Virus record (IMG/VR): IMGVR_UViG_3300021963_000021
Location: 124,001-188,000 of that record
DNA length: 64,000 nucleotides
Reading direction: 5' to 3' (one strand)
A program made the position numbers and the translations under genes. Shown in pieces: positions 6,001 through 60,684 of this stretch; position 1 is the first letter of the stretch, and each line of letters starts with the position of its first letter. The notes beneath the pieces were generated by a model, which saw nothing but the letters and a program-made list of their open reading frames with translations, did no database searches and was not told where the DNA came from.

Positions 6001-9000
6001 TCTGTAATTGCTGATTATATTGAAAATCCTACGCTGTCTGGATTGCCTTTTGCTGCGTTATTAGAGAACGATAAGATGGCATTGTATAATGCTTCTTACG
6101 TAGTTGATTCGGACGATTTCTTAGTCAATATTCAGTTTTTCAATAATGACAAACAGCAAAATCTAATCCATAACGAATATCAACTATTGGCAGAAGGATC
6201 AATAGAAGGTCCAAATCAAGAGTTAGAAAACAAATGGATTGACAGTTTAGTTGGTCAGGATATATTAGGTAACGAAGTACCTGATAGAAAACTAACAGAA
6301 AAATCAAAATATGGAATCGCAGCAAGACCTGTTCAAACTATGTTTGTTAATAAAAATGCTGCGGTAAAAATTACCATCGATTATATTAATGATGTATTGT
6401 TGACATATCCGTTGGCTGACAATATTTCATACGATAATTTAAACAGCATAAGTCAACCTCCGTCTAAGAATAAGAATCTATATGATCTTGTCTATGACAC
6501 CTATGAAGAAATTGCTCTGTTAAATGTTATTAAAATAAAAACAGCAACATTGAAAGCAAATATTATTAATGGACACATTAATACTGTCGATGTTGTTGAT
6601 GCTGGCTACGGATATAAAGTTCCTCCGACAGTGAAAATAATGGGCACAGGAGAAGGCGCAGTTCTTGAAACAGTAATAGATACATTTGGTAGAATTACCA
6701 AGGTCAATGTTTTACGTGCTGGCAAAAAATACACAGAGGCTAGAATTCAAGTTCGACCATTCAGTATCCTTGTAAATTCAGATTCTACAGTTAACGGGTT
6801 CTGGAGTATATGGAGTATCAATGATAGAAACAAAGAGTTCTATAGATCTGCTACGCAGACACACGATACTACCAAGTTCTGGGACAAGGTCGATTGGTGG
6901 GCAGCAGGATTCAACGAAAAATCTAGAATAAAATACAACCTTCCTGGATTGTATGCTGAGCCTGAAGTTGACCTCAACGTTGGTGAACTATTGCGTTTAG
7001 AAGACTACGGTTCGGGCGGCTGGGCAGTTATTGAACGAACAAACACAAATCCAACACTGTTAGGAAAATATAGATTAGTTGGTAGAGAGCTAGGAACAAT
7101 TCAGATATCTGAAAAGTTTTATAACAAAACAGCATCATCTTATGGTTATGATTTAACTCAGAGCTTTGACAGTGATAAGTTTGATACTTCATCTGCTATT
7201 GAATTTAGAAATATATTGAAAGCAGTAAAAGAAGATATCTTTATTAATGAGCTAGACACTGAGTGGAACAAATTGTTCTTTGCGAACATACATTATGTGT
7301 TTTCAGAACAGCTATATGTAAGCTGGGCTTTTAAAACTAGCTTTATGAATGCTGTACACAATGTTGGATACCTTGAAGAAAAATTAAATTATAAGAGCGA
7401 TAATTTATCTAGCTTCCAACAATACATCAATGAAGTTAAGCCTTATAGAACTAAGATTAGAAAATACACAAGTAGATATCTAGGGCTCGACAGGTCAGGT
7501 CTATTAACATCTGACTTTGATTTACCGCCAGCATATGATATTGACACAAATACAATTAATCCTGTAAAACTAGGAGATAGTTTAGTTGATCAGTATCCTT
7601 GGAAAAATTGGTTTGAAAATTACAAATATACCATAGTAGAAATAAAGATATTAGACAACGGTTCTACTTATAGAACTGTACCTCAAGTAATATTTGAGGG
7701 TGGCGGCGGCAGTGGTGCTAAAGCCAAGGCTTTTATCTCTAACGGCAAAGTTACTAATATTAAATTAATATCCGGAGGCTACGGTTATACAACAGCACCT
7801 AAAGTAAAAATAGTAGGTGGTGTAGGTAGCAATGAAGAAAATTCTGCTAAAGCTATCGCTGTGATTGGTAATTCAAAAGCAAGAACTTTCGATATGACTG
7901 TGAAGTTTGATCGTTACTCTAAACAAGGAAAATTCACAGCCTCTAGTAAGAATGAAAAATTTATAGAAACAGAAACCTTCCTAGAAGGTAAGAGCACTTA
8001 CGATTTAAAATACCCACCGACTACAGATAAGTCAAAAATATCTGTTACAGTTAATGGTAAGAAACTTTTAAGAAACGATTATGTAATAACATTGTTTACA
8101 AAAGAAGTTGACGGGTATACACAATTGAAAGGTCGACTAATACTGCCTGCTGTCGCAGTTGGAGCGGTGTTGGTAACGTATGAAAAGAACGATCAGATAT
8201 TAGATGCTCTAAACAGATTAGACAAATACTACAAGCCTTCTTCGGGTATGCTTGGATTCGAAAAGACCGAAATAACTGATGATAATGGAAATGTAATATC
8301 AGTTAAGAGTGATTACTCTCAACTAATGACAGGTATTGACTTTGGCGGAGTCATAGTACAAGGTGCTACATTTGATGTGGGCGCAGGTTGGGATGCTCTT
8401 CCATGGTTTACAGAAGGTTGGGACAGCTCGGAAACATTAGACTCTGATTTTTATATTGCTGCTGACGACAGCACACATTCATTTAATCTTCCAGAGATAT
8501 TAAAAGAAGGTACAGAGTTAAATGTCTACCAGAAGAAAAAATCTACAGGAAAAACAACAAGATTAGATCCTGACCAAATGCCAACATATGTTGCTGACGG
8601 ATCAACGTCTACAGTTATTATTCCTGACGAGATATTAGTTGAGAACGGAGATATATTCATATTCCGTAAGCCTTCAAGTGACGGCAGTTTAGTAATTGGT
8701 GGAAGAAATCTTCTTGATGCTAATGTGTCTGGTGGCAGTTTGTCTGGCATGACTCCTTATGCTACTGCGTTAGGAACAACAGCATCTGAAATAGTTATCG
8801 ATGGCGATAAGTTTGTCAGCCCAGATCAAGTTCCTGCTCCCGAGGAACAAGTTCCTGGTCAAGTTTTAGAAGCAGTGAGTATCAAGGTATTCCATACAAA
8901 CAGAACAGGCTCTCCTGCGGTACTGTCAAATGTTTATATCGCTGACGGAACAACAAATCTATTTGATATTGGTCAAACTGTCATTGAACAAAACTCTGTG

Positions 9001-33614: not shown

Positions 33615-34045
33615 GAAACCTCAGACTTTCCTTTACTCAACGGAGTGACATTAATGAACCCTGCGTTTACACGCTCGGGCTCTGCTACTCCGTCATCGGC
33701 GAGCATGTTTCTAACAATATCACGGAACCAACGATCGACAATTTCTTCGTCAGCGTCGCCATCGAATCCGTAACCTTCTTGTTTTAATTGTAACACAAAT
33801 AATTCGTTCCAGTCAAGCTCAAAAAAACCGTTGCGTATATTATCCTTGTTAACATGAGTATCTAAAACGGATACCCAAGGTTCACCTTTTCTAGTAGCAC
33901 GTTCTTTTGGAGTCAGTTTAGCGAGTTCTTCTGCTTCTTTGGCTTTAAGTGCTTCTCCTTCGGCAACTTTCTTTTCTTGTTCTAATCTTGCTTTGTCTGC
34001 CTCTAATTTAGCAATACCTGTAATTTTTTTAAACCAATCTTTCAT
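33611..34045 (-). CDS. Hypothetical protein (likely start MKDWFK, TAATG-coupled to queE)
   Basis: Stop/start overlap at 34043-34047. Confidence 0.6.
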   Translation of the reverse strand: MKDWFKKITGIAKLEADKARLEQEKKVAEGEALKAKEAEELAKLTPKERATRKGEPWVSVLDTHVNKDNIRNGFFELDWNELFVLQLKQEGYGFDGDADEEIVDRWFRDIVRNMLADDGVAEPERVNAGFINVTPLSKGKSEVS

Positions 34046-34905
34046 TATGTACCCCACTCATTTTTAAATAACGGCACCTGTAAGCGGTCACTATAACGTA
34101 AACCATGTTTCATTGCCATAATAGCTACCGCTTTATTGTTTAATGCGTAAACACTTTCAACACCACCGACTGGCATTAGATAAACGTGTCCTTTAAATCC
34201 AGCGGCACGATATTCGCTTGCGGCTTTAAGCGCATAGTCGCGATCTTCTTCTGTGGCAATAACAAATTTCAAGTATGCTGTACCAACTTCTTCATACTCA
34301 CAAACAACCTCTGGAAGAATTGCTTCTTCCCACTTCTCACCACTACAAGGAAGTTTAGCACTGACACTGAATGTAACTTCTCTAGTGAAGTCTAAGTTAG
34401 GCATCTGCCACTGTAATAGATAGTCTTTAAATTCTGGACTTAGTTTTTGAGTACCATTTGTTTCAAAAGTAATTTCTTTCAATCCAGACATCTTAGGATT
34501 ATCTAGCAAGTCTGGATAAGCACGTTGCCAACCTAGCAATGGCTCGCCACCTGTAATTACGAGATGTTCGTCTAACCATTCATTATGTGGAAGGATTTCC
34601 ATAATTCGATCTGCTATAGCATCGCTTGTGAGCATTGGACTAAGGTCTTTGAATCTTGGATCCCAACTTGCGTAACTGTCACAGCCTGTACTAACAAGTG
34701 GAAGTTCTTCATATTTTGTAAATGGTTTTAAAGTATGTGCTAACGCAATGGTGTCAACTTCGTCACTTAGTTCACCACGTGGCATTCCGAAACCAGCACA
34801 TTTAAAGTTACAACCAAATGTACGTAAGAAAACAGAAGGCACACCCATATAGCGTCCTTCACCTTGTATGCTGTAAAACAGCTCTGCGATTTTGATTTTG
34901 CTCAT
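34045..34905 (-). CDS. queE: 7-carboxy-7-deazaguanine synthase (radical SAM)
   Basis: ELFYSIQGEGRYMGVPSVFLRTFGCN..C..CDS, VITGGEPLL, FETNGT, SDRLQ. Likely start ATG 34905. Confidence 0.88.
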   Translation of the reverse strand: MSKIKIAELFYSIQGEGRYMGVPSVFLRTFGCNFKCAGFGMPRGELSDEVDTIALAHTLKPFTKYEELPLVSTGCDSYASWDPRFKDLSPMLTSDAIADRIMEILPHNEWLDEHLVITGGEPLLGWQRAYPDLLDNPKMSGLKEITFETNGTQKLSPEFKDYLLQWQMPNLDFTREVTFSVSAKLPCSGEKWEEAILPEVVCEYEEVGTAYLKFVIATEEDRDYALKAASEYRAAGFKGHVYLMPVGGVESVYALNNKAVAIMAMKHGLRYSDRLQVPLFKNEWGT

Positions 34906-48580: not shown

Positions 48581-49198
48581 TTATCCTACCAAAATGTGTA
48601 GTGCGTGTTCGTAGTGTTTTTTACGATCTTCTAAACCAATAGTGCCACCGTTAATACGTTTGGTCATTGTTAGAATATCGCCAGAGTCGGCGAATTGATT
48701 TAAATTATTTGCTGCCCAAAACCAACCTGCTGAAAGAACTGCTCCCGGAGATGTCTCTAGTAATTCTGGTTCTTCAAGTAAGTCTGCTCCGAGTGCTTCA
48801 CCGCAGGCACGATAGTTATTTTTACCAGTGACTTGGATTAGCCCGCGACCGCGATATTTAAAACCTTCACCGCTGGCTTCGTCACCGTTGCCCATACGAT
48901 TAGCATACACTCTATTAGCAATCATTTGTGGCTTGCGTTCGTAGTGTGCTGCTGTGGCATCATCTGGGAAATATTTTGGGAATGTGCCTCTTAGTCCCTT
49001 TGCTCCATAGTTGAGATTCTCAACCATGAAATTAAAATTACCACTTTCATGAGCACACTGAGCAAGGAAAGCAGCTTGCCTTGCTGGTGTCATGATATCG
49101 AACAATTCAAATGTTTCTACAAAACCTTCATACAGTTCTGCTACTCTTTGCTTTTTAGCCTCAGGAAAGGCTTCTTGAATTTGTTCTAAAAGAATCAT
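48581..49198 (-). CDS. GH19 (chitinase-class) endolysin
   Basis: AAFLAQCAHES, ENLNY, YRGRGLIQVTGKNNY, SAGWFW, TKRINGG. Confidence 0.92.
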   Translation of the reverse strand: MILLEQIQEAFPEAKKQRVAELYEGFVETFELFDIMTPARQAAFLAQCAHESGNFNFMVENLNYGAKGLRGTFPKYFPDDATAAHYERKPQMIANRVYANRMGNGDEASGEGFKYRGRGLIQVTGKNNYRACGEALGADLLEEPELLETSPGAVLSAGWFWAANNLNQFADSGDILTMTKRINGGTIGLEDRKKHYEHALHILVG

Positions 49199-49208
49199 CT
49201 CTTGTCCT

Positions 49209-50021
49209 TTATTCTGCTAGAGTCTTGTGGAGATCCCACTCACCGCCCATTTTTTCGTAAGTAACAGCAGCAAATGCCTGAGCCTTAGCAGACTCGTTGA
49301 ATTTGCTAGTACCTACTCTGTTTGCCCACTGCCATAGATTCTTGTCAAGTGGATCAATCTGCATTGTGCCTTGACTTTCGCTAACAATCTGTAAGCAACG
49401 CTTGAATGTTAGTCTGTCTGCGCTTTCTTTAACAGCAACTTTCTTTTTATCTTTGACCGCTTTCTTCATCGGCTCTTTCTTGTCGCCGTCTTTGTCCATG
49501 TCTAAGAAGTCTGGTTTAGATCCTTCAGCAACCTTCTTATCTTTCTTTTTCTTAGCAATAGCTATAGCGGCCTGCTGTTTAGCATTAGCAGCTTCTTTGA
49601 CTTTTTTCTTTGTTGTTTCTGGCTTGTCATCGTCATCAACTTCTGGCTTGTTATCATCAGAACCGCCGTAGTTGCCTGGACCAGCTTTGTGAACGATACC
49701 TGTTTTAGTCTTAGTAACAGTACCACCTTTAGCAGTTTTCTTGCTGTCGCCGACTTTCATTTCTTCTTTGACTGCGCCTTTCTTCTTGTCAGCAACAGCT
49801 TTTTTCATTGGCTCTTTTTTGTTGCCGTCTTTGTCCATGTCTAAGAAGTCTGGTTTAGCTTTTTTAGCTTCTGCCAATACTGTTGATAGTCCAGCTAGCA
49901 CACGGATTTCAGCATCTTCTGATAGCTGAATCTTTGGCGCTGCCGCTTCAGTTATCGTTACTGCTTTTTTAGCAGGTGTTTCGAAACTTGCGATTTTAGA
50001 TACTAGTGCTTTGAAATCCAT
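49209..50021 (-). CDS. Lys-rich putative internal head protein with duplicated DxDxDG module (likely start MDFKAL at 50021)
   Basis: KPDFLDMDKDG(N/D)KKEPMKKAV occurs twice; several xxE junctions; SD AAGGA. Confidence 0.6.
   Translation of the reverse strand: MDFKALVSKIASFETPAKKAVTITEAAAPKIQLSEDAEIRVLAGLSTVLAEAKKAKPDFLDMDKDGNKKEPMKKAVADKKKGAVKEEMKVGDSKKTAKGGTVTKTKTGIVHKAGPGNYGGSDDNKPEVDDDDKPETTKKKVKEAANAKQQAAIAIAKKKKDKKVAEGSKPDFLDMDKDGDKKEPMKKAVKDKKKVAVKESADRLTFKRCLQIVSESQGTMQIDPLDKNLWQWANRVGTSKFNESAKAQAFAAVTYEKMGGEWDLHKTLAE
49485..49858. repeat. Exact 35-bp direct repeat (49485-49519, 49824-49858)
   Basis: GCCGTCTTTGTCCATGTCTAAGAAGTCTGGTTTAG occurs twice, with imperfect flanks. Confidence 0.9.
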
Positions 50022-50025
50022 GATA

Positions 50026-50373
50026 TTATCCTTGGGTTTTGTAATTTTTCCATTGTTCAAGAAGCTGACTTTCAACTTCCTGCTTTGCTGATTCGTCGAG
50101 ATCTAGATCACCTTCGTCGGCATTATCTTGATCTGCGGGTTCAAATTTCTTTTGATATTCTAAATGATGAGAAACAGTGTCTAGATAATCAGAAGCTAGA
50201 GTTATTTTCTTTGAAACCCAACCTTCTAAATTATCGCCTGGCTGAATCATATGAAACAGCTTGATAGCATATTCTGCTGCTTTGTAAAGCTCAGCTTTAG
50301 CCATAGAAGCTTCGTGATCGTGATGATCTGCTTCATACGGAATAGTCTGGTTTTCTTTGAATACCTTTTTCAT
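50026..50373 (-). CDS. Hypothetical protein, probable head-associated
   Basis: 115 aa; TAAATA (50384-50379) 5 nt before the ATG. Confidence 0.6.
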   Translation of the reverse strand: MKKVFKENQTIPYEADHHDHEASMAKAELYKAAEYAIKLFHMIQPGDNLEGWVSKKITLASDYLDTVSHHLEYQKKFEPADQDNADEGDLDLDESAKQEVESQLLEQWKNYKTQG

Positions 50374-50381
50374 AGTTGTAT

Positions 50382-50642
50382 TTATCTTTTGATAGCAGAG
50401 CCGCTGCCAAACAAACTAGTGCCTTGATCTAGGGCATTTTTAGCTGTGCCGTCTGCATTTTTACGTTGTGAAACTTTTGGCTGTGGTGGCGCTTTTGTAC
50501 CGGATTTTCCAGGACTTCCTGTGTAGCTTTTCTTACCACGTGCTGGACCTGGGCTAATATGAGGGTTAGGAACGCTAGCAATATTACCAGCGGATGTTGC
50601 TCCGGCAGTTGCTGTTTCCCTTAATATGTCTGATATTTTCAT
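50382..50642 (-). CDS. Small basic putative internal head protein
   Basis: MKISDILRE N-terminus; G/P/K-rich. Confidence 0.55.
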   Translation of the reverse strand: MKISDILRETATAGATSAGNIASVPNPHISPGPARGKKSYTGSPGKSGTKAPPQPKVSQRKNADGTAKNALDQGTSLFGSGSAIKR

Positions 50643-50824
50643 TTTATTTCTCTAATATTATTTACTAATGCGTCTTTACCGTACTGGGCTCTAAGTAGCC
50701 TTCTAGCCATTTCTTTATTTTTAGCAGTTACTGTAGTGTCGATCATTTGGCTATAGCCAGGCTGTTTTACTTTAACACGAGCACTCCAAAATTTAAAAGG
50801 AAATGTAACTTCTTCGGCTCTCAT
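50639..50824 (-). CDS. Hypothetical protein
   Basis: 61 aa, ATGA-coupled on both sides. Confidence 0.55.
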   Translation of the reverse strand: MRAEEVTFPFKFWSARVKVKQPGYSQMIDTTVTAKNKEMARRLLRAQYGKDALVNNIREIK

Positions 50825-52665
50825 TTCTTTTTACCCTGTCTCATATTTATTTGCCAATGTGCCAATTGTTTTTTACGAGGGCTAGCTGAATCGCTGCTGC
50901 GAATCTTTTTTAACTGAGCAATAGTCATGCCCTTTCTAATACCGTGACGTTTACTATCGCCTTTGTCTTGCGGGTTTTTACCATCAGCAAAATTTTCGTC
51001 TACATTATATGTTGGATCAGTCTTCTGCCGTTTCATTTTTTTAGGCTGCTTAGGATCTTTAGGGTCGATGTCTGTTGTAGTAAGTCCTGATTTTTCTAGA
51101 CCTTTGATATATTTGTGTTCTTCTTCTTCGCTGCCAAAGGAAAAAATTGTACTAGGAGGTCCCTTACCGAAGTCGTGTTTACCTAGACCTTTCATATTGC
51201 TTATGTGCTGTCCTAGTTTATACCAATCGTATACATCACTTACATCGACCCTAACTGTACCGGCTGGCATAGTAGGTTTAACTTCCGGGCCGCGCGGCTG
51301 TTCGTTTGGATGTTGGTCTTCATCTTGCTTGTTTATATCAAAGTCTGGCTCATCATCTTGGCCAAATATTTTTTCTAAGAATTCACCTACATACCAAAAC
51401 CAGTTTTTAAAATGCCCAGGATTAGTATCGTAATCCATGTGTGCTGAGTGCGATGCGGCATTATAAAGATTTTTTAGTTGAGGTTTAACACTGAACTCAC
51501 TCGCTACTCTAGTTAACTCTTTGCTAATCCTATTAGCACCTTCTTCGTCTTCATGTTGTTCTACACCGAAGCTGGCTTCTCTATAAGCACCTAATAACGC
51601 TCTACCAGCTTTAGGATCCATGCTTTGCCATGATGTTGATGCTTCTTGTATACTTTCGATAGCTGGTTTATCAAACAGGTTCGGGTATTTCTTATTGAAG
51701 TGTCTCATGATCACACCGCCTATAGCGTGTGCTTCATTCTCGTCACTGCTGCCGGTTTCGCCGCTGTTTTTGTTTAGTTGATGATGAGTTAGCTGTTTCC
51801 AATGTACTAGTTCATGGGCCAGGGTTCTCATAATATCTAATGGATGTCTGTTTTTAACTCCTACGTAGATAACTTTTTCATCATTTTCTAATTTGCCAAA
51901 TGTAGGTTGATCGGAGTTATCTATTTTTTTCAGTAGCACTATCTTAGGTAACTTCTTTATTCCTAACTGTTTCATAGCAATAGGAAAGAACTTTCTTAAA
52001 ACACTTTTTAGATCAGTATCGATATTTTCTTTAACTTCTTCGTCTTTGTCACCGCTAGAATGAACAGCAATCATCTTACCTCTATCTAAGCTCTGTAACT
52101 TTTGCGGTTCATGTTTTTCATCGCCTTGACCTACACGCCTGGCACGTTTAAAGCCGTCTAGAATTTTTTGTAGGCTGTCTTCGTCTGCTTGGTACTTGAT
52201 ACCAATACCGCCCGCAGCTTCCCAAGCAGTAATGTTGCTGCCTCTATCATCAATTAGTACGTTAGGCATGCCGTTGGCATTTTTAGCATACTTGGCTTTG
52301 TTAGAAACAATATAGATATTCTTTGGAGGTATGTTTAAATGTTTGTTGATCCAGACTTTTTTGTAGTGTGCGGATCCTTCATGATCACCACGCAACGGAC
52401 TAGAGCAGATGTTGTAACTGTCTGCGGCCTGTACTACCATTTGTAATAGTTTATCTGCTGTGGGGAACTTAGGCAATCGAGCAAAGAAATCTGTACCTAC
52501 CATTTTATTTAAAGTAGGGTCTGTTTTTGCTGGAGGAATATCTCTGTAGTTGCCGCTTTCAATACCGGCAAGTTTTGCGTACTCAGTAAAAAAGTCAGCG
52601 AGAACACCGTCCATGTCAACATAGACTTCCATTCCTTCTGGTAATTTTAAATCGTTAGCTTTCAT
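50821..52665 (-). CDS. Multidomain protein: HAD 5'-nucleotidase-like + HExxH metallopeptidase-like + basic modules (likely start 52665)
   Basis: VYVDMDGVLADF..LIDDRGSN..W..AGG; RTLAHELVHWKQ..ENEAHA. Confidence 0.75.
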   Translation of the reverse strand: MKANDLKLPEGMEVYVDMDGVLADFFTEYAKLAGIESGNYRDIPPAKTDPTLNKMVGTDFFARLPKFPTADKLLQMVVQAADSYNICSSPLRGDHEGSAHYKKVWINKHLNIPPKNIYIVSNKAKYAKNANGMPNVLIDDRGSNITAWEAAGGIGIKYQADEDSLQKILDGFKRARRVGQGDEKHEPQKLQSLDRGKMIAVHSSGDKDEEVKENIDTDLKSVLRKFFPIAMKQLGIKKLPKIVLLKKIDNSDQPTFGKLENDEKVIYVGVKNRHPLDIMRTLAHELVHWKQLTHHQLNKNSGETGSSDENEAHAIGGVIMRHFNKKYPNLFDKPAIESIQEASTSWQSMDPKAGRALLGAYREASFGVEQHEDEEGANRISKELTRVASEFSVKPQLKNLYNAASHSAHMDYDTNPGHFKNWFWYVGEFLEKIFGQDDEPDFDINKQDEDQHPNEQPRGPEVKPTMPAGTVRVDVSDVYDWYKLGQHISNMKGLGKHDFGKGPPSTIFSFGSEEEEHKYIKGLEKSGLTTTDIDPKDPKQPKKMKRQKTDPTYNVDENFADGKNPQDKGDSKRHGIRKGMTIAQLKKIRSSDSASPRKKQLAHWQINMRQGKKK

Positions 52666-52739
52666 TAATGTTGCCCGTATGGATTTAAAGGGCGATCTTC
52701 TTCGCCTTGTTGTTCTGGATAAACAGGATATTGGTTCAT
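52665..52739 (-). CDS. 24-aa micro-protein [24 protein letters not shown]
   Basis: Start overlaps the erpA stop (ATGA); stop overlaps the next start (TAATG). Confidence 0.55.
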
Positions 52740-53062
52740 ACTGAAAAACTACTCCCACAACCACATGTAGATTGAGCGTTAGGATTTTTAATCACAAACT
52801 GACTGCCTTGTAATTCTTCTTTGTAATCTATTTCGGCTTCGTTCATATAGGTCATGCTCATTGAATCAATCAACACAACATGCTTTTCATCTAACGGTAT
52901 TTCCCAATCATCTTCATTCTTTACTTCGTCAAATGTAAAACCATATTGGAAACCAGAACAGCCGCCACCTTGAACAAAGGTGCGTAGCATTAAGTTAGGA
53001 TTGTTTTCTTCTAATAGAAGATCAAGTATTTTTGCTTTTGCTGATGCTGTTATCTCAACCAT
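52736..53062 (-). CDS. erpA: A-type Fe-S cluster carrier (ErpA/IscA/HesB)
   Basis: [31 protein letters not shown]. Confidence 0.9.
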
Positions 53063-53283
53063 TTATCATCCCCAATAGGTTTTTCTCCGGTCAGGTAAGG
53101 CTTACTGAACCATAATTTAAACCATTCTGGTGTGCCTGGTTTGATATTATGTTTCTTCATTAGCTCGCCTTTTTCGTTTCCAGTTATGCTGATGTTGCTA
53201 CCTTGTTCAATGGCATATGGTGTATATCCTTTGAACTCGTTAGTAATACCTGCTAACTTTTTTAGTTCACTTATCGGATCCAT
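53050..53283 (-). CDS. Hypothetical protein
   Basis: 77 aa; [21 protein letters not shown]. Confidence 0.6.
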
Positions 53284-53992
53284 CTGCTTTCTTATGGCTC
53301 TTGTAGCCTTTGTTTTTCATTGACCATGCTAGGGCAAAAGGATTGTCTATGTCTTTATGTTTCTTCATAGCTTTAACTGTGCCTTTAAAACCTGGAGGTG
53401 CTTTTTCACCTAATGCGCCTTTGATATCACCTTTAGCTAATTTCTTCAGCGGCCCGCCAATATCTTTGGCAATCTTCTGACCTATTGTCTTAGGTTCAGC
53501 AGCTTTTTTTGCTAACTTTTGCTCAGCACGATCAGCACGGTAGTTAATTTCTGCTTCACGAGATTTTGCCATGGCGTCTTTATATTCCTGACTTGTTTCA
53601 GCAATGCTTTCTGTTGCTGGCTCACCGGTAACATGAACAGTCCACTTCTTACCAGTAGCAGCAGATTTTTTATCAGCCCATGCTTTTAATTGTTGATAGT
53701 GGGCTTTTTCACGATAGTCGTCGGCATACGTTCCACGTCCTGCAAATACTTTCCATTTTTTACCGTTGATGTAGACAGCAAAGTTATTTGGCGGTTCTGT
53801 ATTGCCTTCGTCCCAATCTTCTGGATCTCTGGCCTCTGCTACTTCTTTATTCTTATGCTTAACATCGCCTTGCTTGGCAGCTTTCTTTTTATCTTTGTGT
53901 GCGCCAGCACCGCTTTTGACAGCGTTCTTAGCTACAAAGTTACGTGGCTTTGGAGGTTCTTTCTTTTCAAAAATAAGATCTTTAATTTTCAT
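53267..53992 (-). CDS. Lys-rich modular putative internal head protein
   Basis: MKIKDLIFE N-terminus; modules separated by VAE/ATE/IAE/LGE. Confidence 0.55.
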   Translation of the reverse strand: MKIKDLIFEKKEPPKPRNFVAKNAVKSGAGAHKDKKKAAKQGDVKHKNKEVAEARDPEDWDEGNTEPPNNFAVYINGKKWKVFAGRGTYADDYREKAHYQQLKAWADKKSAATGKKWTVHVTGEPATESIAETSQEYKDAMAKSREAEINYRADRAEQKLAKKAAEPKTIGQKIAKDIGGPLKKLAKGDIKGALGEKAPPGFKGTVKAMKKHKDIDNPFALAWSMKNKGYKSHKKADGSDK

Positions 53993-53993
53993 A

Positions 53994-54878
53994 TTAATAT
54001 TTTCCTATATCTATTTCACGGCCTCTGCCTATAGGACGCTTACCTTGTTTTTCTTTAAACCGGTTATACTGAGCTAATGCTCGTATTTTTGCTTCCATAG
54101 CTCCTGCCTTGTACAAGACGTACTCAATGTTTTCATAGTTTCCATATTTAAGAAATTCTAATATGGACTCGAACTGTTTATTTAAACTCGATACTAGGGC
54201 CTGCTCGTTCCAAGTCCCCATGCCACCGTCAGGTCTAATCTCTACACCTTTTTCTGGATTGTTAACTAACACAGCTTCATCGGCCATGTCTTCTTTAATT
54301 TTTAATCCCATTCTTACTGCCTTATAGAGTTCGTCTGACAAATTACCAGCGCCTGTTACTTGAGCAAACGTTTCAGGATCATTGCTTCTTGCTGCGTTAC
54401 GAGCTGCGCTGGCACTAATGCCTGTTAGCCCTTCGCCGTCTGGATCTCTGTCACCACTAGATACTAGGTTGATGCTGTCAAATTGATAAACACCGTGAGC
54501 TGATTCGACGCCGTTATATTTTTCTAACAGCTCTCTAAAACTCTCAAGTCTATCAGAACCTGCGACAACTGTTACATTTCTATAACCTTCGTTATACAAC
54601 ATAACAGAAATTTTCATTATGGTATTGATGCTAGCATCGTCTGATATGTGTGATGCGTGTTGCGGAAACATTGACTTTAGAAATTTCACTTTGGTAGCAA
54701 AATCTAAAGGATTATCTTTCTTTGGTGTTTGAGCAGGGCTAACAAATATTCTATAATTTTTATTAGTCTGTGCTAGAGTGTCAAACACTGCTCCGTGACC
54801 AATCGTAGGAGGATTCATTCTGCCAAAGCAGAAAGCAATAGAATCATCCTTGGCTTCGAACAGGTGTCTTAATCTCAT
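53994..54878 (-). CDS. Cytidylyltransferase-like (HIGH-class) nucleotidyltransferase
   Basis: FCFGRMNPPTIGH, KDNPL, VAGSDR, GISASAAR. Confidence 0.8.
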   Translation of the reverse strand: MRLRHLFEAKDDSIAFCFGRMNPPTIGHGAVFDTLAQTNKNYRIFVSPAQTPKKDNPLDFATKVKFLKSMFPQHASHISDDASINTIMKISVMLYNEGYRNVTVVAGSDRLESFRELLEKYNGVESAHGVYQFDSINLVSSGDRDPDGEGLTGISASAARNAARSNDPETFAQVTGAGNLSDELYKAVRMGLKIKEDMADEAVLVNNPEKGVEIRPDGGMGTWNEQALVSSLNKQFESILEFLKYGNYENIEYVLYKAGAMEAKIRALAQYNRFKEKQGKRPIGRGREIDIGKY

Positions 54879-55231
54879 CGATCATATGCTCCAGAGTCAA
54901 TATGATTTTTTTGTTCATCGGCAAATCGTTGAGCAACACTCTTTAATAGATCATCTGTAAAAATTTTATCTTTAATGTCATTTAGATCAAATTTCTTAAC
55001 ATAGATGTCTAGACATTTCTTTACAGGCTCCATGTAATACTTTGATGCTGGATCTTCTGAGTGTAGATCTTCTTGATGCTTTTTAATAGCAGGGAAGAAG
55101 TGTGTAGACAACAGGTCGTTGTCGTTGTCGATGAAGAATTTTAAATCGCCTGCGTAATCGACGTCTTGATCAAGGCGTTTGTCTTTGGTCTCTGATGGTA
55201 CCTCAAATAATTCATTCAATAACATTACCAA
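54875..55231 (-). CDS. Hypothetical protein
   Basis: 118 aa; MLLNELFE N-terminus (start possibly 55225). Confidence 0.6.
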   Translation of the reverse strand: MVMLLNELFEVPSETKDKRLDQDVDYAGDLKFFIDNDNDLLSTHFFPAIKKHQEDLHSEDPASKYYMEPVKKCLDIYVKKFDLNDIKDKIFTDDLLKSVAQRFADEQKNHIDSGAYDR

Positions 55232-56001
55232 CTCCTACAAGACCAATAACGTGCTTTCCAACGTGGGCCTGGATTTTTACAATTATGACGAGCTCTAAAA
55301 GACTTGCGTCTCTTAGGATTAGATTTTTTAATACGCATGTTCTTATCGCCAAAGTTTACTTTGACAATATTACCGTTAGGCTTGCGTACATATACTTTTG
55401 ATTTCTTTACATCGCCTGGAAGTTTTTTACCTAGCGGAACATTCTTTCCGTGATATTCTGCTTCTTCCATGCTACATTCTTTCAGACCGTGTACTGGGCA
55501 ACTTTCTCCCAACGGTGTGTGATTACATTCTGCTTCTTCATTTGTAGGTACACAATTAGGAACAGTTTTTCCACCCTTCTTCTTAGTACCGACTGGCTTG
55601 TAGCCTTTCCAGCAAGGATTTTCTGTTCTAAGGCTTTCTGTTAGACCGCCATCTAGAAAACGCACACCTTCTGATTCTAAATATTGAATTGCTTGATCAT
55701 CTAATTCAACAACTATACCATCTTCTGTAAAGCCAACTATTTCTGTACCGATCTCGAAATCTTCAGAAAAGCTAAATCCTATGCTGTCGCCTAGTGCTAG
55801 TCCTTTGGACTTGGCTTCTCTATCTAGGTCAGCTTTACGTTGTAAAATTGCTTGGGAAATTTCAGGGTCTTCAGCAGCAACAGGATCCGTCTGTAGATCT
55901 TGTAGTGCTTTCTTTTTTGCTTCGTAATCGCCCTTAGGGTCTTTGGGATTTAGAGCAGTTTCTTTTATAATGCTGTCTAGTTTATCCAGAATGTCACGCA
56001 T
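55225..56001 (-). CDS. Modular protein with Cys-containing basic modules (putative internal head protein)
   Basis: NPCWKGY..VPNCVP; CNHT..CPVHG..C; VNFGD..RRKSFRARHNC..ARYWSC. Confidence 0.6.
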   Translation of the reverse strand: MRDILDKLDSIIKETALNPKDPKGDYEAKKKALQDLQTDPVAAEDPEISQAILQRKADLDREAKSKGLALGDSIGFSFSEDFEIGTEIVGFTEDGIVVELDDQAIQYLESEGVRFLDGGLTESLRTENPCWKGYKPVGTKKKGGKTVPNCVPTNEEAECNHTPLGESCPVHGLKECSMEEAEYHGKNVPLGKKLPGDVKKSKVYVRKPNGNIVKVNFGDKNMRIKKSNPKRRKSFRARHNCKNPGPRWKARYWSCRSW

Positions 56002-56031
56002 AGTATGTTCCTCGAGATCATACTATATTTA
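56000..56031 (-). promoter_or_regulatory. Late promoter TAAATA overlapping a hairpin that encloses the RBS/start of 56001
   Basis: mRNA-sense: TAAAT-ATAGTATG-ATCTCGAGGAA-CATACTAT-G; 8-bp stem. Confidence 0.65.
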
Positions 56032-56381: not shown

Positions 56382-56385
56382 ACTA

Positions 56386-57078
56386 CTATTTATCTACAAC
56401 TTTATAATCATAGACAGCACCTACTATGTCTCCACACCGTAGTTTTAACATCAGCAATGATTTTTCATCCTCGGCCATGATGTATCTGCGATCCCAATTC
56501 CATCCGGTTACAATAAACCATTGCGCAGTAGTATCAGTTATGTGTAAATTGCTTTGACTTTTAATCCATTTAACGGTTTCTGCTTTTTGCTGCGAGTCTT
56601 TGATCTTATGAGGTGCTAAAAACACCTTGTGTTTAAAGCGTCCTTCTGGATATTTGTTAACTATTATCACATTTCTGCTTTTTAATAGATCTTCTGTGCC
56701 TTCTGCTGGGCTAAACACCGAAGTTATATGGTCTGGATGTGTAGTCAGTAGTTTCTGTAATAGTTCTTTTTTGTCAGTATACACATCGAGCATGGCCGAT
56801 TCTAGTCTTATTTGAAAGTCTTCTTTAGGAAGACTATCTAAAAAATAAGCCATGTCTATGATAACTTCGGAGTTAAGGCGGATATCTGTGTGGAAAGACC
56901 CCTTCCACCTAAGCATTCTGTCTGGAGGATCAGTAATATATGCCTGTAATTTATCTAGTGTGCGTTCTCTTAGCACACTAACACCAGGAATACGGTAAGT
57001 GACCTTGTAGGGCCACTTACGATAAAACAATTTTTTAGTTTGTTTGTGTTTCATTGGTAAGCAGATTTGCTCCATCAT
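56386..57078 (-). CDS. Hypothetical protein
   Basis: 230-aa ORF; start may be internal (MKHKQTK). Confidence 0.6.
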   Translation of the reverse strand: MMEQICLPMKHKQTKKLFYRKWPYKVTYRIPGVSVLRERTLDKLQAYITDPPDRMLRWKGSFHTDIRLNSEVIIDMAYFLDSLPKEDFQIRLESAMLDVYTDKKELLQKLLTTHPDHITSVFSPAEGTEDLLKSRNVIIVNKYPEGRFKHKVFLAPHKIKDSQQKAETVKWIKSQSNLHITDTTAQWFIVTGWNWDRRYIMAEDEKSLLMLKLRCGDIVGAVYDYKVVDK

Positions 57079-59377
57079 TGATTCTACGTTGATGCTTTAA
57101 TGCTCGTTTTTCATACTTGCTTAATTCATCACCGAGATTTTTAATTTCAAATGAAAGTTTATCATCAATGACTGTGACAAATACACGGCCGCCTTCTTTT
57201 AGCTCACCAAACAGCATTTTACGACTTAACGGACTTTTGAGTTCGTTGTCAATTAAACGTGACAGCGGTCTTGCGCCCATCTTGCTGTTGTAACCATTCT
57301 TAGCTAACCAGTCTCTTGATTCTTCATTTAACACAATCTCAACATACTTGTCTTTGATCTGTGTGTTAAGCTCACGAATAAACTTGTCAACAATGATTCT
57401 AACGGTGTCTACAGACAGTTTGCCGAACTTGACAATGGCATCTAAACGATTGCGGAATTCAGGAGCAAAATATTTCTTAACTGCCTTAACGTCCTCGCCT
57501 TCTTTGTCTAATTCGCCAAAGCCGATTGTATTCTTTTCGTTGTCAGCGGCACCTAAGTTTGAAGTCATAATTAGAATACAGTTACGACCGTCTGCTTGTT
57601 TGCCATTTGACCCTGTTACAAATCCATTATCCATGAACTGTAATAGGATGTTTGAAACATCGGGATGAGCCTTTTCGATCTCATCTAACAACAGAATAGC
57701 GTTTGGCGTTTCTTGTAACTTGGTAATCAGTTGTCCAGCGTTATCTTCAAAGCCGACGTAGCCCGGGGGAGCACCGATTAGACGTGCTACACTGTGTTTC
57801 TCTTGATATTCACTCATATCAAAACGCAGTAACGGCATTGCCATTTTTTCCGATAGCTGTTTAGCAGTTTCTGTTTTGCCTGTACCAGTTGGCCCAACGA
57901 ATAAGAAGCAACCGATTGGTTTGTTAGGATTTTTCATTCCTGCTTGTGCTACAAAGATCTTGTCTAGTAGATTTGAAATAGCATCGTCTTGACCAAACAC
58001 TGAGTTTTTAAGATTAGATTCTAAGTCAACGAGATTCTTGCTTTCTTTTTCAGACACAGTTTCAAACGGCATCTTAGTCATTTTGCTGACTTCGAACATT
58101 ATCTGTTCAATGTCTACAAAATTAATTCCTTCGCCCTGTGTTTCATCGTCTTTGATTTTGTATCTAGCACAGGCACAGTCGATAATGTCAATGGCCTTGT
58201 CTGGCAATTTCTTATCTGGCATATACTTGACACTCATCTTAACAGCGTTCTCGACAGCAGCATCGGTAATGCGTACTTTGTGATGTTGCTCGTAATAGCG
58301 TTTAATTCCTTTGAGAATCTTAACAGCTAGCTCTGGAGTAGGCTCGTCAACAGTAACACGCTGGAATCTGCGCATTAGGGCACGATCCTTTTCAAAGTGC
58401 TTGCGATATTCTTCCCAAGTAGTTGACGCAATGACTTTCATAGTTCCTTTGGTCAACATGGGCTTGAGCATATTTGCCAAGTCGTTAGCTGAACCATTGG
58501 CAGCACCTGCTCCGTTCATCATATGTGCTTCGTCAATGAACAGCACGACCTTACCTTTGCGTTCAAGGGCAGCGATAACTGCTTTAAGTCGTTCTTCGAA
58601 ATCACCGCGGTACTTGCTGCCGGCTAGCAGTGCTGAGATGTCTAATGTGTATACAATATGATCTTGTATAAATTTAGGAACCTTTCTTTCGAAGATCTTG
58701 CGAGCAAGTCCTTCTGCGATAGCAGTCTTACCGACACCTGGTTCACCGATCAACAGTACATTGCTCTTCGATCGCCTTGCTAGAATTAATTGTATATCTT
58801 CTAGTTCTTGTTCACGGCCAATTACAGGGTCAATCTTCTTTTGTTTTGCCATTAAACTAAGGTTAGTACAATAGGCATTTAGGATTTTATCAAGTTGGTT
58901 TGGGTTCAATGTTTTAACAGCGTTTTCTGGTTCTTCGGAATTTTCAAATTTTTCTTGGTAATACTCGATAAACTTTTCTTTGACAACGCCTGCCTTAGTT
59001 AGATAGTAATAGGAAAAACTTTTCTTTTCAGATAGGATAGAAATTAAGACATCTTGTACTTCAATTTTTTGACGCCCACTAAACAACACCTGTGTAAAGC
59101 TACGATTAAGCACACGTTCTACAGATGCTGTACGTTTAGGTTTTACGCCAGGTTGTGAAGTTTTAATTTCGCTGAGATTAGTTTTTAAAAACTGTTCTAG
59201 ATTTGCTTTAATAAAATCACAGTTGGCACCGTAATCTAGAAGTTCTTTAAAAGTTTCTTCGTCACACATCACAGCAAATACTAGATGCTCGAGTGTTACG
59301 TATTCGTGCTCTAGCTTTTGCGCAATGTCAATAGCTCTTTCAAAAATGGCTTGTAATTTATCGCTTGGTTCTAGCAT
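57035..59377 (-). CDS. clpA: ClpA-type AAA+ chaperone/protease ATPase
   Basis: Clp N-domain (HEYVTLEHL); two Walker A motifs (GEPGVGKT, GPTGTGKT); RFDMSEY; IGF ClpP-docking loop; no ClpB middle domain. Confidence 0.92.
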   Translation of the reverse strand: MLEPSDKLQAIFERAIDIAQKLEHEYVTLEHLVFAVMCDEETFKELLDYGANCDFIKANLEQFLKTNLSEIKTSQPGVKPKRTASVERVLNRSFTQVLFSGRQKIEVQDVLISILSEKKSFSYYYLTKAGVVKEKFIEYYQEKFENSEEPENAVKTLNPNQLDKILNAYCTNLSLMAKQKKIDPVIGREQELEDIQLILARRSKSNVLLIGEPGVGKTAIAEGLARKIFERKVPKFIQDHIVYTLDISALLAGSKYRGDFEERLKAVIAALERKGKVVLFIDEAHMMNGAGAANGSANDLANMLKPMLTKGTMKVIASTTWEEYRKHFEKDRALMRRFQRVTVDEPTPELAVKILKGIKRYYEQHHKVRITDAAVENAVKMSVKYMPDKKLPDKAIDIIDCACARYKIKDDETQGEGINFVDIEQIMFEVSKMTKMPFETVSEKESKNLVDLESNLKNSVFGQDDAISNLLDKIFVAQAGMKNPNKPIGCFLFVGPTGTGKTETAKQLSEKMAMPLLRFDMSEYQEKHSVARLIGAPPGYVGFEDNAGQLITKLQETPNAILLLDEIEKAHPDVSNILLQFMDNGFVTGSNGKQADGRNCILIMTSNLGAADNEKNTIGFGELDKEGEDVKAVKKYFAPEFRNRLDAIVKFGKLSVDTVRIIVDKFIRELNTQIKDKYVEIVLNEESRDWLAKNGYNSKMGARPLSRLIDNELKSPLSRKMLFGELKEGGRVFVTVIDDKLSFEIKNLGDELSKYEKRALKHQRRINDGANLLTNETQTN

Positions 59378-59378
59378 A

Positions 59379-59873
59379 TCACCTTCTCTTTTTAATTTTC
59401 TTCATTGCTAAGTCTAACTTCATCTTACTAACTCTGTCAACAAAACAGATGCCCTCTAAATGATCATACTCATGTTGAAAACATTTTGCTAGGTATCCGT
59501 CCATCTTGACTTCGTGTATGTTGCCTTTGCTGTCTTGATATTCTGCTCGAATCCAAGCAGGTCGTTTTACCATCAACCACATTCCGGGAAAACTCAAACA
59601 ACCTTCTTTGTCCATCTTTGTTTCTTCGCTGTGTTCTAGGATCACAGGATTAAACAACGCAAAAGGTTCTGGAAATCCTGTTATGTTTTTACTGCCCATA
59701 ACAAACACACGTTTAGCAAGTCCTATTTGATTTGCTGCTAGACCAATACCTCCGTTGGCTAACATAAAATCTACCATTTCTTTTTCTAGTTGCTCAGCAT
59801 CACCGTCTGTGCCGAACTCCCAAGGAGTGCTAGCTGAGGTTAAACTTTCGTGTATACCTAATTTATATTCCAT
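59379..59873 (-). CDS. def: Peptide deformylase
   Basis: [24 protein letters not shown]. Confidence 0.95.
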
Positions 59874-60684
59874 TTTTGGCTTGTTCTAATAGCTGTTTTT
59901 GATTTTCGTTTAGATTCTTGGGTATTTTAACTTTTACTCTTATTAAAAGATTACCCCTGACTCCACTTTTATGATGAGGAATGCCTTCTCCTCTACAACT
60001 TAATACAGTTTCCGGTTGTGTGCCCGGAGGAATACCTATAGTAAAAGTTTTATTATCTATAGATGTTATAGTCATTTCAGAACCTAATAATGCTTCCCAG
60101 ACAGATATCTCATGTTCACAGATTAAGTTAACGCCTTCTCTCTTAAATTTTGGATGGGGTCTAACTCTAACTGTTACTATTAAATCGCCTGGAGCAAATT
60201 TAGGTTGACTATGGTCGCCCATTCCTGGGTAACGTATCTGTACATTATCATCAATGCCTACTGGAATATTAATAGATACCAGTTTTCGTTGTCCGTTGCG
60301 GAAAGTAACTTCGGCATTAAGTTCTTTGCCGGTCATTACATCTTCTAGGCCAATTTCAACATGAGCACCTATGTTACTATTTCTTGGCTGTGCCTGTTGG
60401 AAACCAAATCCAAACTGTGGCCCGCCAAAGAACGTAGAAAATATTCCATCGTCACCAAATTGGCTGCTAAACCCTCCAGCACCGCCAAAGGGATTTGGGC
60501 TATCGTATTCTGCTCTTTTTTGATCATCGCTAAGAGTAGCATACGCTTCTTGTATTTCTTGAAACTTTGCGGGGTCTCCGCCGCGGTCAGGATGATGCTT
60601 CATCGCTAATTTGCGATAAGCTGATTTTATTTCATCTGATGTTGCTGAGGCAGAAACGCCTAATACTTTATAATAATCCATCAT
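59863..60684 (-). CDS. dnaJ: DnaJ/CbpA-type co-chaperone (no zinc finger)
   Basis: J domain with HPD, G/F-rich linker, C-terminal GDLIV/GNLLI domain. Confidence 0.9.

Follow-up and report, generated by a model that had tools for sequence, protein, structure and literature searches.

A plastic, putatively late gene cluster that probably encodes internal or ejected proteins in an uncultured T4-related jumbo phage

We analysed a 64,000-nucleotide stretch of DNA (hereafter the window) that comprises positions 124,001-188,000 of the IMG/VR record IMGVR_UViG_3300021963_000021 (363,943 bp), an uncultured jumbo phage genome of ~364 kb that CheckV rates as complete. A cluster of 11 genes on the minus strand of this window (49209-56001) is probably a plastic late locus, and its products would be internal or ejected proteins of a jumbo phage related to T4. 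Seven or eight of the 11 products would carry an amphipathic propeptide of 8-14 residues at the N-terminus, which, by analogy with T4, would dock the protein onto the scaffold core during prohead assembly. A gp21-type Peptidase_S77 protease would then cut after the Glu that ends this leader, as in the scaffold and the capsid protein, and the mature protein, freed inside the head, would leave with the DNA at infection. The predicted cargo includes an HxGH nucleotidyltransferase, a fusion of an NT5C nucleotidase with an HExxH module, several Lys-rich proteins, at least one of which would probably be chopped to basic peptides that could sit on DNA, and small proteins. We regard this T4-like model with moderate confidence. 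A sequence-only reading of the same DNA had proposed such capsid-targeted cargo, and the proposal gained from the T4-like machinery and leaders, from the conservation of a leader outside the predicted protein fold and from homologues present in the virions of two cyanophages, but lost from the lack of a leader on some genes and from the replacement of one leader Glu by Gly in a relative. Positions given below are those of the window, unless they are marked as positions of the whole record (G000).

Leaders of the cluster proteins and of the head module

The 11 genes lie head to tail, with starts that overlap or abut the stops of the genes upstream (TAATG, ATGA), and their orthologues in L010, a 74-kb metagenomic relative, begin at equivalent start codons. 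All seven N-termini that the sequence-only reading had listed are genuine starts of minus-strand open reading frames (ORFs). The leader is clear in seven genes, in which P3 (with the Glu counted as P1) is Leu, Ile or Phe, and doubtful in an eighth, where the ending is S-F-E. Proceeding downstream, and with a caret for the predicted cut, the carriers are a 258-residue (aa) protein with a Cys/Lys-rich C-terminal domain (55225-56001; 14-aa leader MRDILDKLDSIIKE^T; matched by PHROGs of unknown function only), a 116-aa acidic protein (54875-55225; MLLNELFE^V), the 294-aa 'cytidylyltransferase'-like HxGH nucleotidyltransferase (53994-54878), whose leader MRLRHLFE^A is followed by a core at residues 13-195, a disordered linker and a helical tail, a 241-aa Lys-rich protein (53267-53992; MKIKDLIFE^K), a 614-aa mosaic protein (50821-52665) in which an ATG start and a 10-aa leader, then Gly, precede an NT5C domain, an HExxH module and a basic tail, an 86-aa protein (50382-50642; MKISDILRE^T, then ATAGATSAGNIA; PHROG 17311 covers residues 7-24), a 115-aa acidic helical protein (50026-50373; MKKVFKE^N) and, as the weaker case, a 270-aa Lys-rich protein (49209-50021; possible 14-aa leader MDFKALVSKIASFE^T; PHROG 24078 matches two stretches). 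The three leaderless genes are a 77-aa ORF (53050-53283), which has no convincing leader and whose N-terminal motif is internal in L010, a gene for an IscA/HesB-like Fe-S cluster protein (52736-53062; Pfam PF01521, 2.8e-17), which breaks the run, and a 61-aa basic ORF (50639-50824), which is conserved in L010. Pfam returned no match for 7 of 10 cluster proteins, nor for most of the modules dissected from them.

The head module of this phage is encoded outside the window, in the same genome. Its protease matches Pfam Peptidase_S77 (PF03420, gp21-type) with 88.9 bits and its major capsid protein matches Gp23 (PF07068) with 272 bits, both above the cut-off, and between these two genes lies that of a scaffold-like, coiled-coil-like 363-aa protein that starts MLDIVKQLFE. 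The protease itself has the N-terminus MKNYLSE, and an acidic core protein encoded just upstream of it starts MSDKNKIAE. We predicted the capsid maturation site at ...KYLSE^SATAG through an alignment by eye to the ...FLTE^A of T4 gp23, which is cleaved at Glu65. The scaffold contains 22 internal (L/I/V)-x-E sites versus 11.4 expected from its composition, an excess that fits a protein cut to pieces. The h-x-E signature (h, hydrophobic) is common to the scaffold, the protease, the predicted capsid maturation site and the leaders of the cluster, so that these leaders look like the proteins that the protease of this phage presumably cuts.

The capsid targeting sequence of T4 is carried by the internal proteins IPI, IPII and IPIII and by Alt, and gp21, the prohead protease, cuts it off (Mullaney & Black 1996, via PMC9026906); in the IPIII leader, residues 4 and 7 determine targeting and residues 8 and 10 determine processing (PMC9026906). 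The corresponding T4 N-termini in NC_000866 are MKTYQEFIAE (IPII and IPIII), MLKEQLIAE (gp22), MAKINELLRE (gp24), MELITELFDE (Alt) and MIDKDYIAE (inh). Like these, the leaders described here are short N-terminal propeptides that end in (L/I)-x-Glu, and the signature is found on scaffold and vertex proteins as well; the S77 protease, the gp22-like scaffold, the gp23-like capsid protein and the late-promoter-class motifs are further likenesses, as are a locus that varies among relatives while the leader stays and a predicted cargo with enzymes in it, of which Alt is the T4 example. With positions numbered backwards from the Glu, leaders of 9 residues (MKIKDLIFE, MKISDILRE) are hydrophobic at P7 and P4, as in T4, and the 8-residue leaders (MRLRHLFE, MLLNELFE) at P6, P3 and P2, which is shifted by one relative to T4. 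In contrast to MKTYQEFIAE, the consensus here is M-(K/R)-h-x-(D/E)-(L/I)-h-(x)-E over 8-14 residues. The mature bodies also differ, in having no Pfam or PHROG link to IPI, IPII, IPIII or Alt, which does not define the mechanism; the internal-protein loci of T-even phages are themselves diverse, with bodies that vary and a leader that persists (PMC9026906). On the T4 side, we observed that gp61.1 (a 54-aa hypothetical protein; NC_000866 18,966-19,130) starts MKTFKEFIKE, which is nearly the IPII/IPIII targeting sequence.

The carrier is a further difference from T4, as it is a 364-kb phage whose family-B DNA polymerase shares 44-50% identity with those of Sinorhizobium phage Phosso, Agrobacterium phage Atu_ph07 (the nearest cultured phage by this polymerase), Vibrio phage 2.275.O and 121Q-like coliphages. 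Atu_ph07, Phosso and the 121Q-like (Asteriusvirus) jumbo phages are grouped as Rak2-like by Attai et al. (PMC6102473). At the DNA level, megablast against 50,697 phage records found no match to the cluster interval. Giant phages of the phiKZ/SPN3US type, in which the cleavage motif is (S/A/G)-x-E, have different gene families with no homology to the cluster. They resemble what is proposed for the present phage in that many of their packaged proteins have N-terminal propeptides cut after Glu, and their ejection and inner-body proteins are processed by a T4-like prohead protease (PMC5694885, PMC10052503).

The leader is conserved in the 294-aa nucleotidyltransferase, which has 1876 database homologues at E <= 0.001. 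Among the best 118 of these 1876, with the query and its 87% identical twin excluded, 111 have Glu at residue 8, and the usual N-terminus is M-x-(L/I/F)-x-x-(L/I)-F-E. In an alignment of 57 sequences with a mean column identity of 25%, Leu6, Phe7 and Glu8 were at least 90% conserved, which is comparable to the nucleotide-binding motifs, and in the AF2 model residues 1-10 (pLDDT 56) lie outside the Rossmann core (pLDDT above 90), the first strand of which spans residues 13-19. A distant homologue in a 121Q-like coliphage, which serves for contrast only, is leaderless and begins directly at this first strand. The family assignment itself is based on the HxGH features GRMNPPTIGH and ISASAAR, with G27, H28, S155 and R160 invariant in the 57 sequences, on a PHROG cytidyltransferase match (6.5e-48) and on Foldseek matches of the model to NadM (NMNAT), PPAT and NadD (probability 1.00; 11-17% identity); the Pfam PF01467 score, 17.9 bits, is below the cut-off of 21, and a sequence search of the PDB gave spurious S-layer matches only. 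Two other families retain their leaders in the same way. The 258-aa protein has more than 8000 homologues, of which the best 120 all have MRD(L/I)(L/I)xKL...(I/V/L)xE^T, and the 115-aa protein has a 7-9-aa leader ending in (V/F/L/I)-x-E, followed by a conserved DHEASMA(K/R)AELYK core, in six of six homologues and in L010 and a second relative, L011.

In order to search the genome with a leader model that was independent of the cluster, we built an 8-residue profile solely from foreign homologues of the nucleotidyltransferase, set a threshold of 6 bits and took the expectation from internal windows of proteins. Eight N-termini reached at least 6 bits versus 0.44 expected, one of them being the query itself, and the matches included the 116-aa cluster gene (with the second-best score), the scaffold (MLDIVKQLFE) and two more products of the head module.

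The cluster sits in an interval, flanked by the ClpA-like and DNA polymerase genes, that is syntenic in L010 and L011, where the gene content is partly different and the kind of leader is alike. The L010 nucleotidyltransferase is 73% identical to that of the cluster, and the L010 orthologue of the 258-aa protein keeps ...VLFE^TALNP. Additional genes with leaders in L010 start MRWKEIAE, MRINEILTE (a DUF6321 protein) and MRQYINILE, and L011 has genes that start MKTTDFITE and MNIFNLFE, the latter encoding a 723-aa protein. Where the leader is conserved, genes and relatives use different synonymous codons, which shows that it is the peptide, rather than the RNA, that is under selection.

The leader could be compared with virion composition through the cyanophages. 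By tblastn, the nucleotidyltransferase family is present in 555 phage records, mostly T4-like cyanomyoviruses, but also Methylophilales phage Melnitz and several jumbo phages, and the cyanophage homologues share 37-43% identity over the core. In purified virions of S-SM1, mass spectrometry detected a protein named as a 'citidylyltransferase' (Sullivan et al. 2010, PMC3037559), and supplementary file 3 of that paper flags a 'Cytitidyltransferase' row 'YES' across cyanophage genomes, in a table with no visible column header (PMC3037559). Virions of S-CREM2 likewise contain the ORF154 cytidylyltransferase by mass spectrometry, and kinases and cytidyltransferases were noted to be frequent in cyanophage virion proteomes, with no mechanism offered (PMC10665884). 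These virion enzymes, which include the SAM hydrolase, kinase and cytidylyltransferase of S-CREM2 and the homologous cytidylyltransferase of S-SM1, have T4-shaped leaders such as MKNFSSFLTE and MKDFDSFLEE, and the cytidyltransferases of P-SSM3 and Melnitz, together with several of their neighbours, have leaders such as MKKFSAFLKE, MQGFKTFLSE and MKKFSEIIE. The cyanophage leaders keep the exact 10-residue spacing of T4, unlike the many 8-9-residue leaders of the present cluster. Neither cyanophage virion paper connects the presence of a protein in the virion with a leader (PMC3037559, PMC10665884), and our literature search found no paper that ties these leaders to packaging outside the T-even phages.

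The pattern (M/V)(K/Q)x(F/L)xxF(L/F)xE, which equals the T4 leader shape and was picked after viewing the data, occurs at a start codon exactly five times in the six-frame translation of S-CREM2, and all five proteins (the SAM hydrolase gp6, gp13, the kinase gp14, gp136 and the cytidylyltransferase gp154) belong to the virion proteome, which comprises 52 of 221 ORFs (hypergeometric P = 6e-4). A 2x2 test with a broader pattern was marginal (P = 0.057); since that pattern missed the kinase, which has a GTG start, it was replaced by the strict one.

Alternative explanations of the leaders

The docking, cleavage, packaging, ejection and any host function of the cluster products are inferred, and several observations weigh against the T4-like model. 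Two of the leaders are imperfect, as that of the 614-aa protein has Pro at P2 and that of the 270-aa protein has Ser, which is not aliphatic, at P3; furthermore, the L010 orthologue of the MLLNELFE gene starts MKLFELFG, with Gly in place of the P1 Glu. The ClpA-to-polymerase interval of Atu_ph07 contained no leader-bearing genes, suggesting that the leader set is specific to this aquatic clade and that the virion proteome of Atu_ph07 is unable to test the idea. Part of the signal in cyanophage virions may come from carry-over of abundant proteins, a caution that the S-CREM2 authors give (PMC10665884). Additionally, a loose rule (h-x-E within the first 16 aa) is satisfied by 23% of the ORFs of this genome, and a similar rule by 55 of 273 ORFs (20%) of T4, most of which do not encode head proteins. 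By the loose rule the cluster ranks first in the genome, with 8 hits among its 11 consecutive genes, and next come the head module and a second locus at 312-320 kb of the whole record, but a label permutation did not find this clustering significant (P = 0.11). A tight motif occurred in 11 genes versus 2.3 in shuffles, although such tight motifs were defined after the data had been viewed. A generic profile built from 13 relatives' leaders was too noisy to yield a genome-wide list of cargo, and also scored a ClpA-like protein and a weakly radical-SAM-like protein (10.1 bits, with its Pfam Radical_SAM match below the cut-off).

Many of these points are also what would be expected if the products were ordinary intracellular late or auxiliary proteins, each with a common amphipathic first helix that serves folding, oligomerisation or expression. 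The frequency of the loose motif here and in T4, its non-significant clustering and the one orthologue without the Glu are all compatible with such proteins, and the nucleotidase, the nucleotidyltransferase and the IscA-like protein look like metabolic auxiliaries. Against this, the nucleotidyltransferase leader lies outside the predicted fold and yet is conserved like core positions, and the leader appears on unrelated bodies, on the scaffold and protease of the head and at the cleavage site of the capsid protein. The homologues found in virions, and the S-CREM2 pattern that marks virion proteins only, argue in the same direction, and we consider this explanation unlikely, if still a serious one.

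It is quite improbable, in our estimation, that the cluster products are protease substrates that enter the prohead for its assembly, as core or scaffold accessories or as DNA-condensing peptides, and are then degraded or retained and not delivered. The 270-aa and 241-aa proteins, which are Lys-rich with an excess of h-x-E sites, are scaffold-like in this respect, the 86-aa protein copies the arm that follows the capsid cleavage site, and T4 gp67, gp68 and gp22 are core proteins that are cut to peptides (PMC9026906). The folded enzymes of the cluster, which have no excess of internal sites, are nevertheless hard to fit as parts of a scaffold, and Alt and the internal proteins of T4 are precedents for cargo that is delivered.

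We also considered whether the leaders could be a chance run of Lys/Glu-rich N-termini in an AT-rich genome. The loose-rule permutation would permit this, but the independent profile found its eight N-termini where fewer than one was expected, two families conserve the leader, one in more than 100 homologues and the other in 120, and the L010 and L011 orthologues retain h-x-E, all of which makes chance a very improbable explanation. Finally, a role of the leader as a tag for regulated unfolding or degradation by the adjacent phage ClpA-like/ClpP/DnaJ machinery is scarcely credible, even with ClpA-like, DnaJ and peptide deformylase genes directly upstream and what we presume to be a ClpP-like N-terminus elsewhere in the genome, because the ClpA-DnaJ pair is kept in Atu_ph07, whose interval has no leader genes, the leaders do not qualify as N-degrons, as their Met stays in place ahead of K, R or L, head proteins carry the leader too, and the regions read around the leader genes of P-SSM3, Melnitz and S-CREM2 contain no Clp gene.

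Genes with similar leaders were observed elsewhere in the record. At 312.5-323.9 kb of G000 these include a DUF6267 protein that starts MRAFEFLTE and has a KxDG motif, which suggests that it is a ligase, and the region G000 309,800-324,000 (L018) also encodes leader-bearing proteins of 377 aa (MKLLDVIDE) and 320 aa (MKTFKDYLRE). Two further N-termini of this kind are MRAFEFLFE (G000 285,933-287,009) and MKIHDVITE (G000 104,794-106,047). Some of the leader genes outside the window have TAAATA directly upstream.

Modular composition and late-promoter-like motifs

The sequence-only reading had described several of these proteins as strings of basic modules joined at h-x-E sites, and the set as cut into peptides. 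This description suits the 270-aa protein, which has nine h-x-E sites versus 2.8 expected, and more weakly the 241-aa protein, but not the nucleotidyltransferase or the 614-aa protein, in which internal h-x-E sites show no excess (4 versus 3.9 expected and 5 versus 6.6 expected). The absence of an excess in these two enzymes makes it more likely that each would be trimmed once rather than diced, and cutting into peptides is thus a prediction for the 270-aa and perhaps the 241-aa Lys-rich protein. The 270-aa protein contains two 'KPDFLDMDKDGxKKEPMKKAV' repeats, each flanked by h-x-E sites, and six of its nine sites stay h-x-E in L010 despite insertions and deletions. No other cluster product is as good a candidate for an internal protein that is associated with DNA and would be cut into peptides.

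Comparison with L010 revealed a gain of modules at h-x-E-type junctions in both the 241-aa and the 614-aa proteins. Residues 1-131 of the 241-aa protein match a 131-aa L010 gene, and an extra C-terminal module is joined to them at ...PATE SIAE^T. The 614-aa protein shares only residues 1-216 and 555-614 with its 345-aa L010 orthologue; an HExxH module is inserted at 217-554, with junctions ...EVKE^N and ...VDE^N, and residues 555-614 form a basic tail that is conserved. This protein had been read as a HAD/peptidase fusion, and its HAD part bears that out: residues 1 to ~165 form an NT5C-type (HAD) 5'-deoxynucleotidase domain with the motif I VDMDGVLADF, above the Pfam cut-off for NT5C (PF06941; 32.7 bits versus 24.8, E 8.6e-08) and matching PHROG 2643, deoxyribonucleotidase (1.3e-20). 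The peptidase part is less certain, as the inserted module has an HELVH motif but gave sub-threshold matches only (Tox-MPTase3, 16.1 bits versus a cut-off of 25; Atlas M78, 0.87, which at below 0.9 is a lead).

Right after its leader the 86-aa protein has E^(S/T)ATAGATSAGN(I/V)A, in which a 12-residue stretch is that found after the predicted capsid maturation site. The ATAGATSAGN(I/V)A stretch occurs in only two places in the genome, in this protein and in the capsid protein (G000 ~92,960), and the DNA encoding it has diverged between the two. The 86-aa protein may mimic the N-arm of the capsid protein or an extended recognition site of the protease.

Late TAAATA promoters had been said to precede the runs of cluster genes, and such motifs were found before the first gene and before three later ones. 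All four are on the minus strand: the first (56026-56031; context GCTAAATATAG) lies 24 nt upstream of the gene that opens the run, and the others lie before the 61-aa ORF (50844-50849), before the 86-aa gene (50659-50664) and 5 nt ahead of the ATG that starts the 115-aa gene (50379-50384), where a leaderless late mRNA is possible. The class is enriched upstream of genes throughout the genome, with 8-mers that contain TAAATA being 15-24 fold enriched in the 60 nt upstream of genes and with 83 nTAAATA sites within 80 nt upstream of 463 ORFs, large structural genes included. Together with a gp55-like late sigma factor encoded in the genome (E = 1.2e-10), this motif class of the structural genes suggests that the cluster may be transcribed late. 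In a scan of 47.5-61.5 kb for sigma-70 promoters and terminators, the promoters were no better than those in shuffled sequence, and no clear operon boundary emerged. As a separate observation, in 20 genes TAAATA ends exactly 4-5 nt short of the ATG, which gives a sharp peak in the spacing histogram; those in the window are at 50374-50384 and 56382-56392 (minus strand). As this spacing leaves no space for a Shine-Dalgarno sequence, these 20 genes may have leaderless or near-leaderless late mRNAs.

Surrounding genes and biological meaning

Directly downstream of the cluster lies a gene for a GH19-type lysozyme (48581-49198, minus strand; Pfam Glyco_hydro_19 on the L010 orthologue), which is not a cargo candidate. 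Directly upstream, at 57035-60684 on the minus strand, are genes for a ClpA/ClpB-like AAA+ protein (780 aa), a peptide deformylase (PF01327, 2e-44) and DnaJ, and the ClpA-DnaJ pair is conserved in L010 and L011 as well as in Atu_ph07. The presumed ClpP-like N-terminus belongs to the ORF at G000 330,174-330,761. A second ORF with an IscA-like N-terminus is at G000 210,539-210,859.

At the start of the window, on the plus strand (1-10875), one open frame of more than 3,600 codons crosses the window boundary and is followed by a long run of genes for proteins of ~590-730 aa. Three of these proteins (625, 593 and 594 aa) have the common N-terminus MPYQ(I/V)(N/D)(K/R)YNG and are probably paralogous fibre or baseplate proteins. 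The radical-SAM-like false positive of the leader profiles is a 286-aa protein (34045-34905, minus strand) that starts MSKIKIAELFYSIQGEG and has weak, below-cut-off matches to Pfam Radical_SAM and Fer4_12. It may resemble QueE (7-carboxy-7-deazaguanine synthase), which, if correct, would hint at 7-deazaguanine modification of the DNA. No tRNA genes were found within the window.

The mechanism proposed for the cluster is the classical capsid targeting of T4, which is already known; new here are its likely occurrence in a jumbo-phage lineage that is uncultured and its likely use on protein families that are abundant in marine phages. If the leaders work as in T4, sequence alone would show which proteins an uncultured jumbo phage brings into the cell, and these would be direct candidates for a part in takeover during the first minute or in counter-defence; the anti-defence effector role that the sequence-only reading had given to these products is conjecture. 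The same model, if true, would explain why cytidylyltransferases, kinases and SAM hydrolases recur in cyanophage virion proteomes, and the leaders might serve as packaging tags for engineering phages beyond the T-even group. It also suggests that T4-related phages could renew the arsenal that they inject by a simple evolutionary route, in which a leader is combined with any module.

More tentatively, and we hold this extension to be rather doubtful, a portable T4-type leader might be the mark of an 'ejectome', large and so far unrecognised, that is spread over marine T4-like phages and jumbo phages related to them. In that event whole families would be virion-delivered, among them the nucleotidyltransferase with its 1876 homologues, the MRDLLSKLDAIVSE family (>8000), the ligase-like DUF6267 proteins, SAM hydrolases and kinases, and injected proteins would be predictable from sequence by means of the leader. 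To gain new cargo, a phage would only have to attach a module to a leader or place it between two h-x-E sites, and some genes would encode polyproteins released by the protease.

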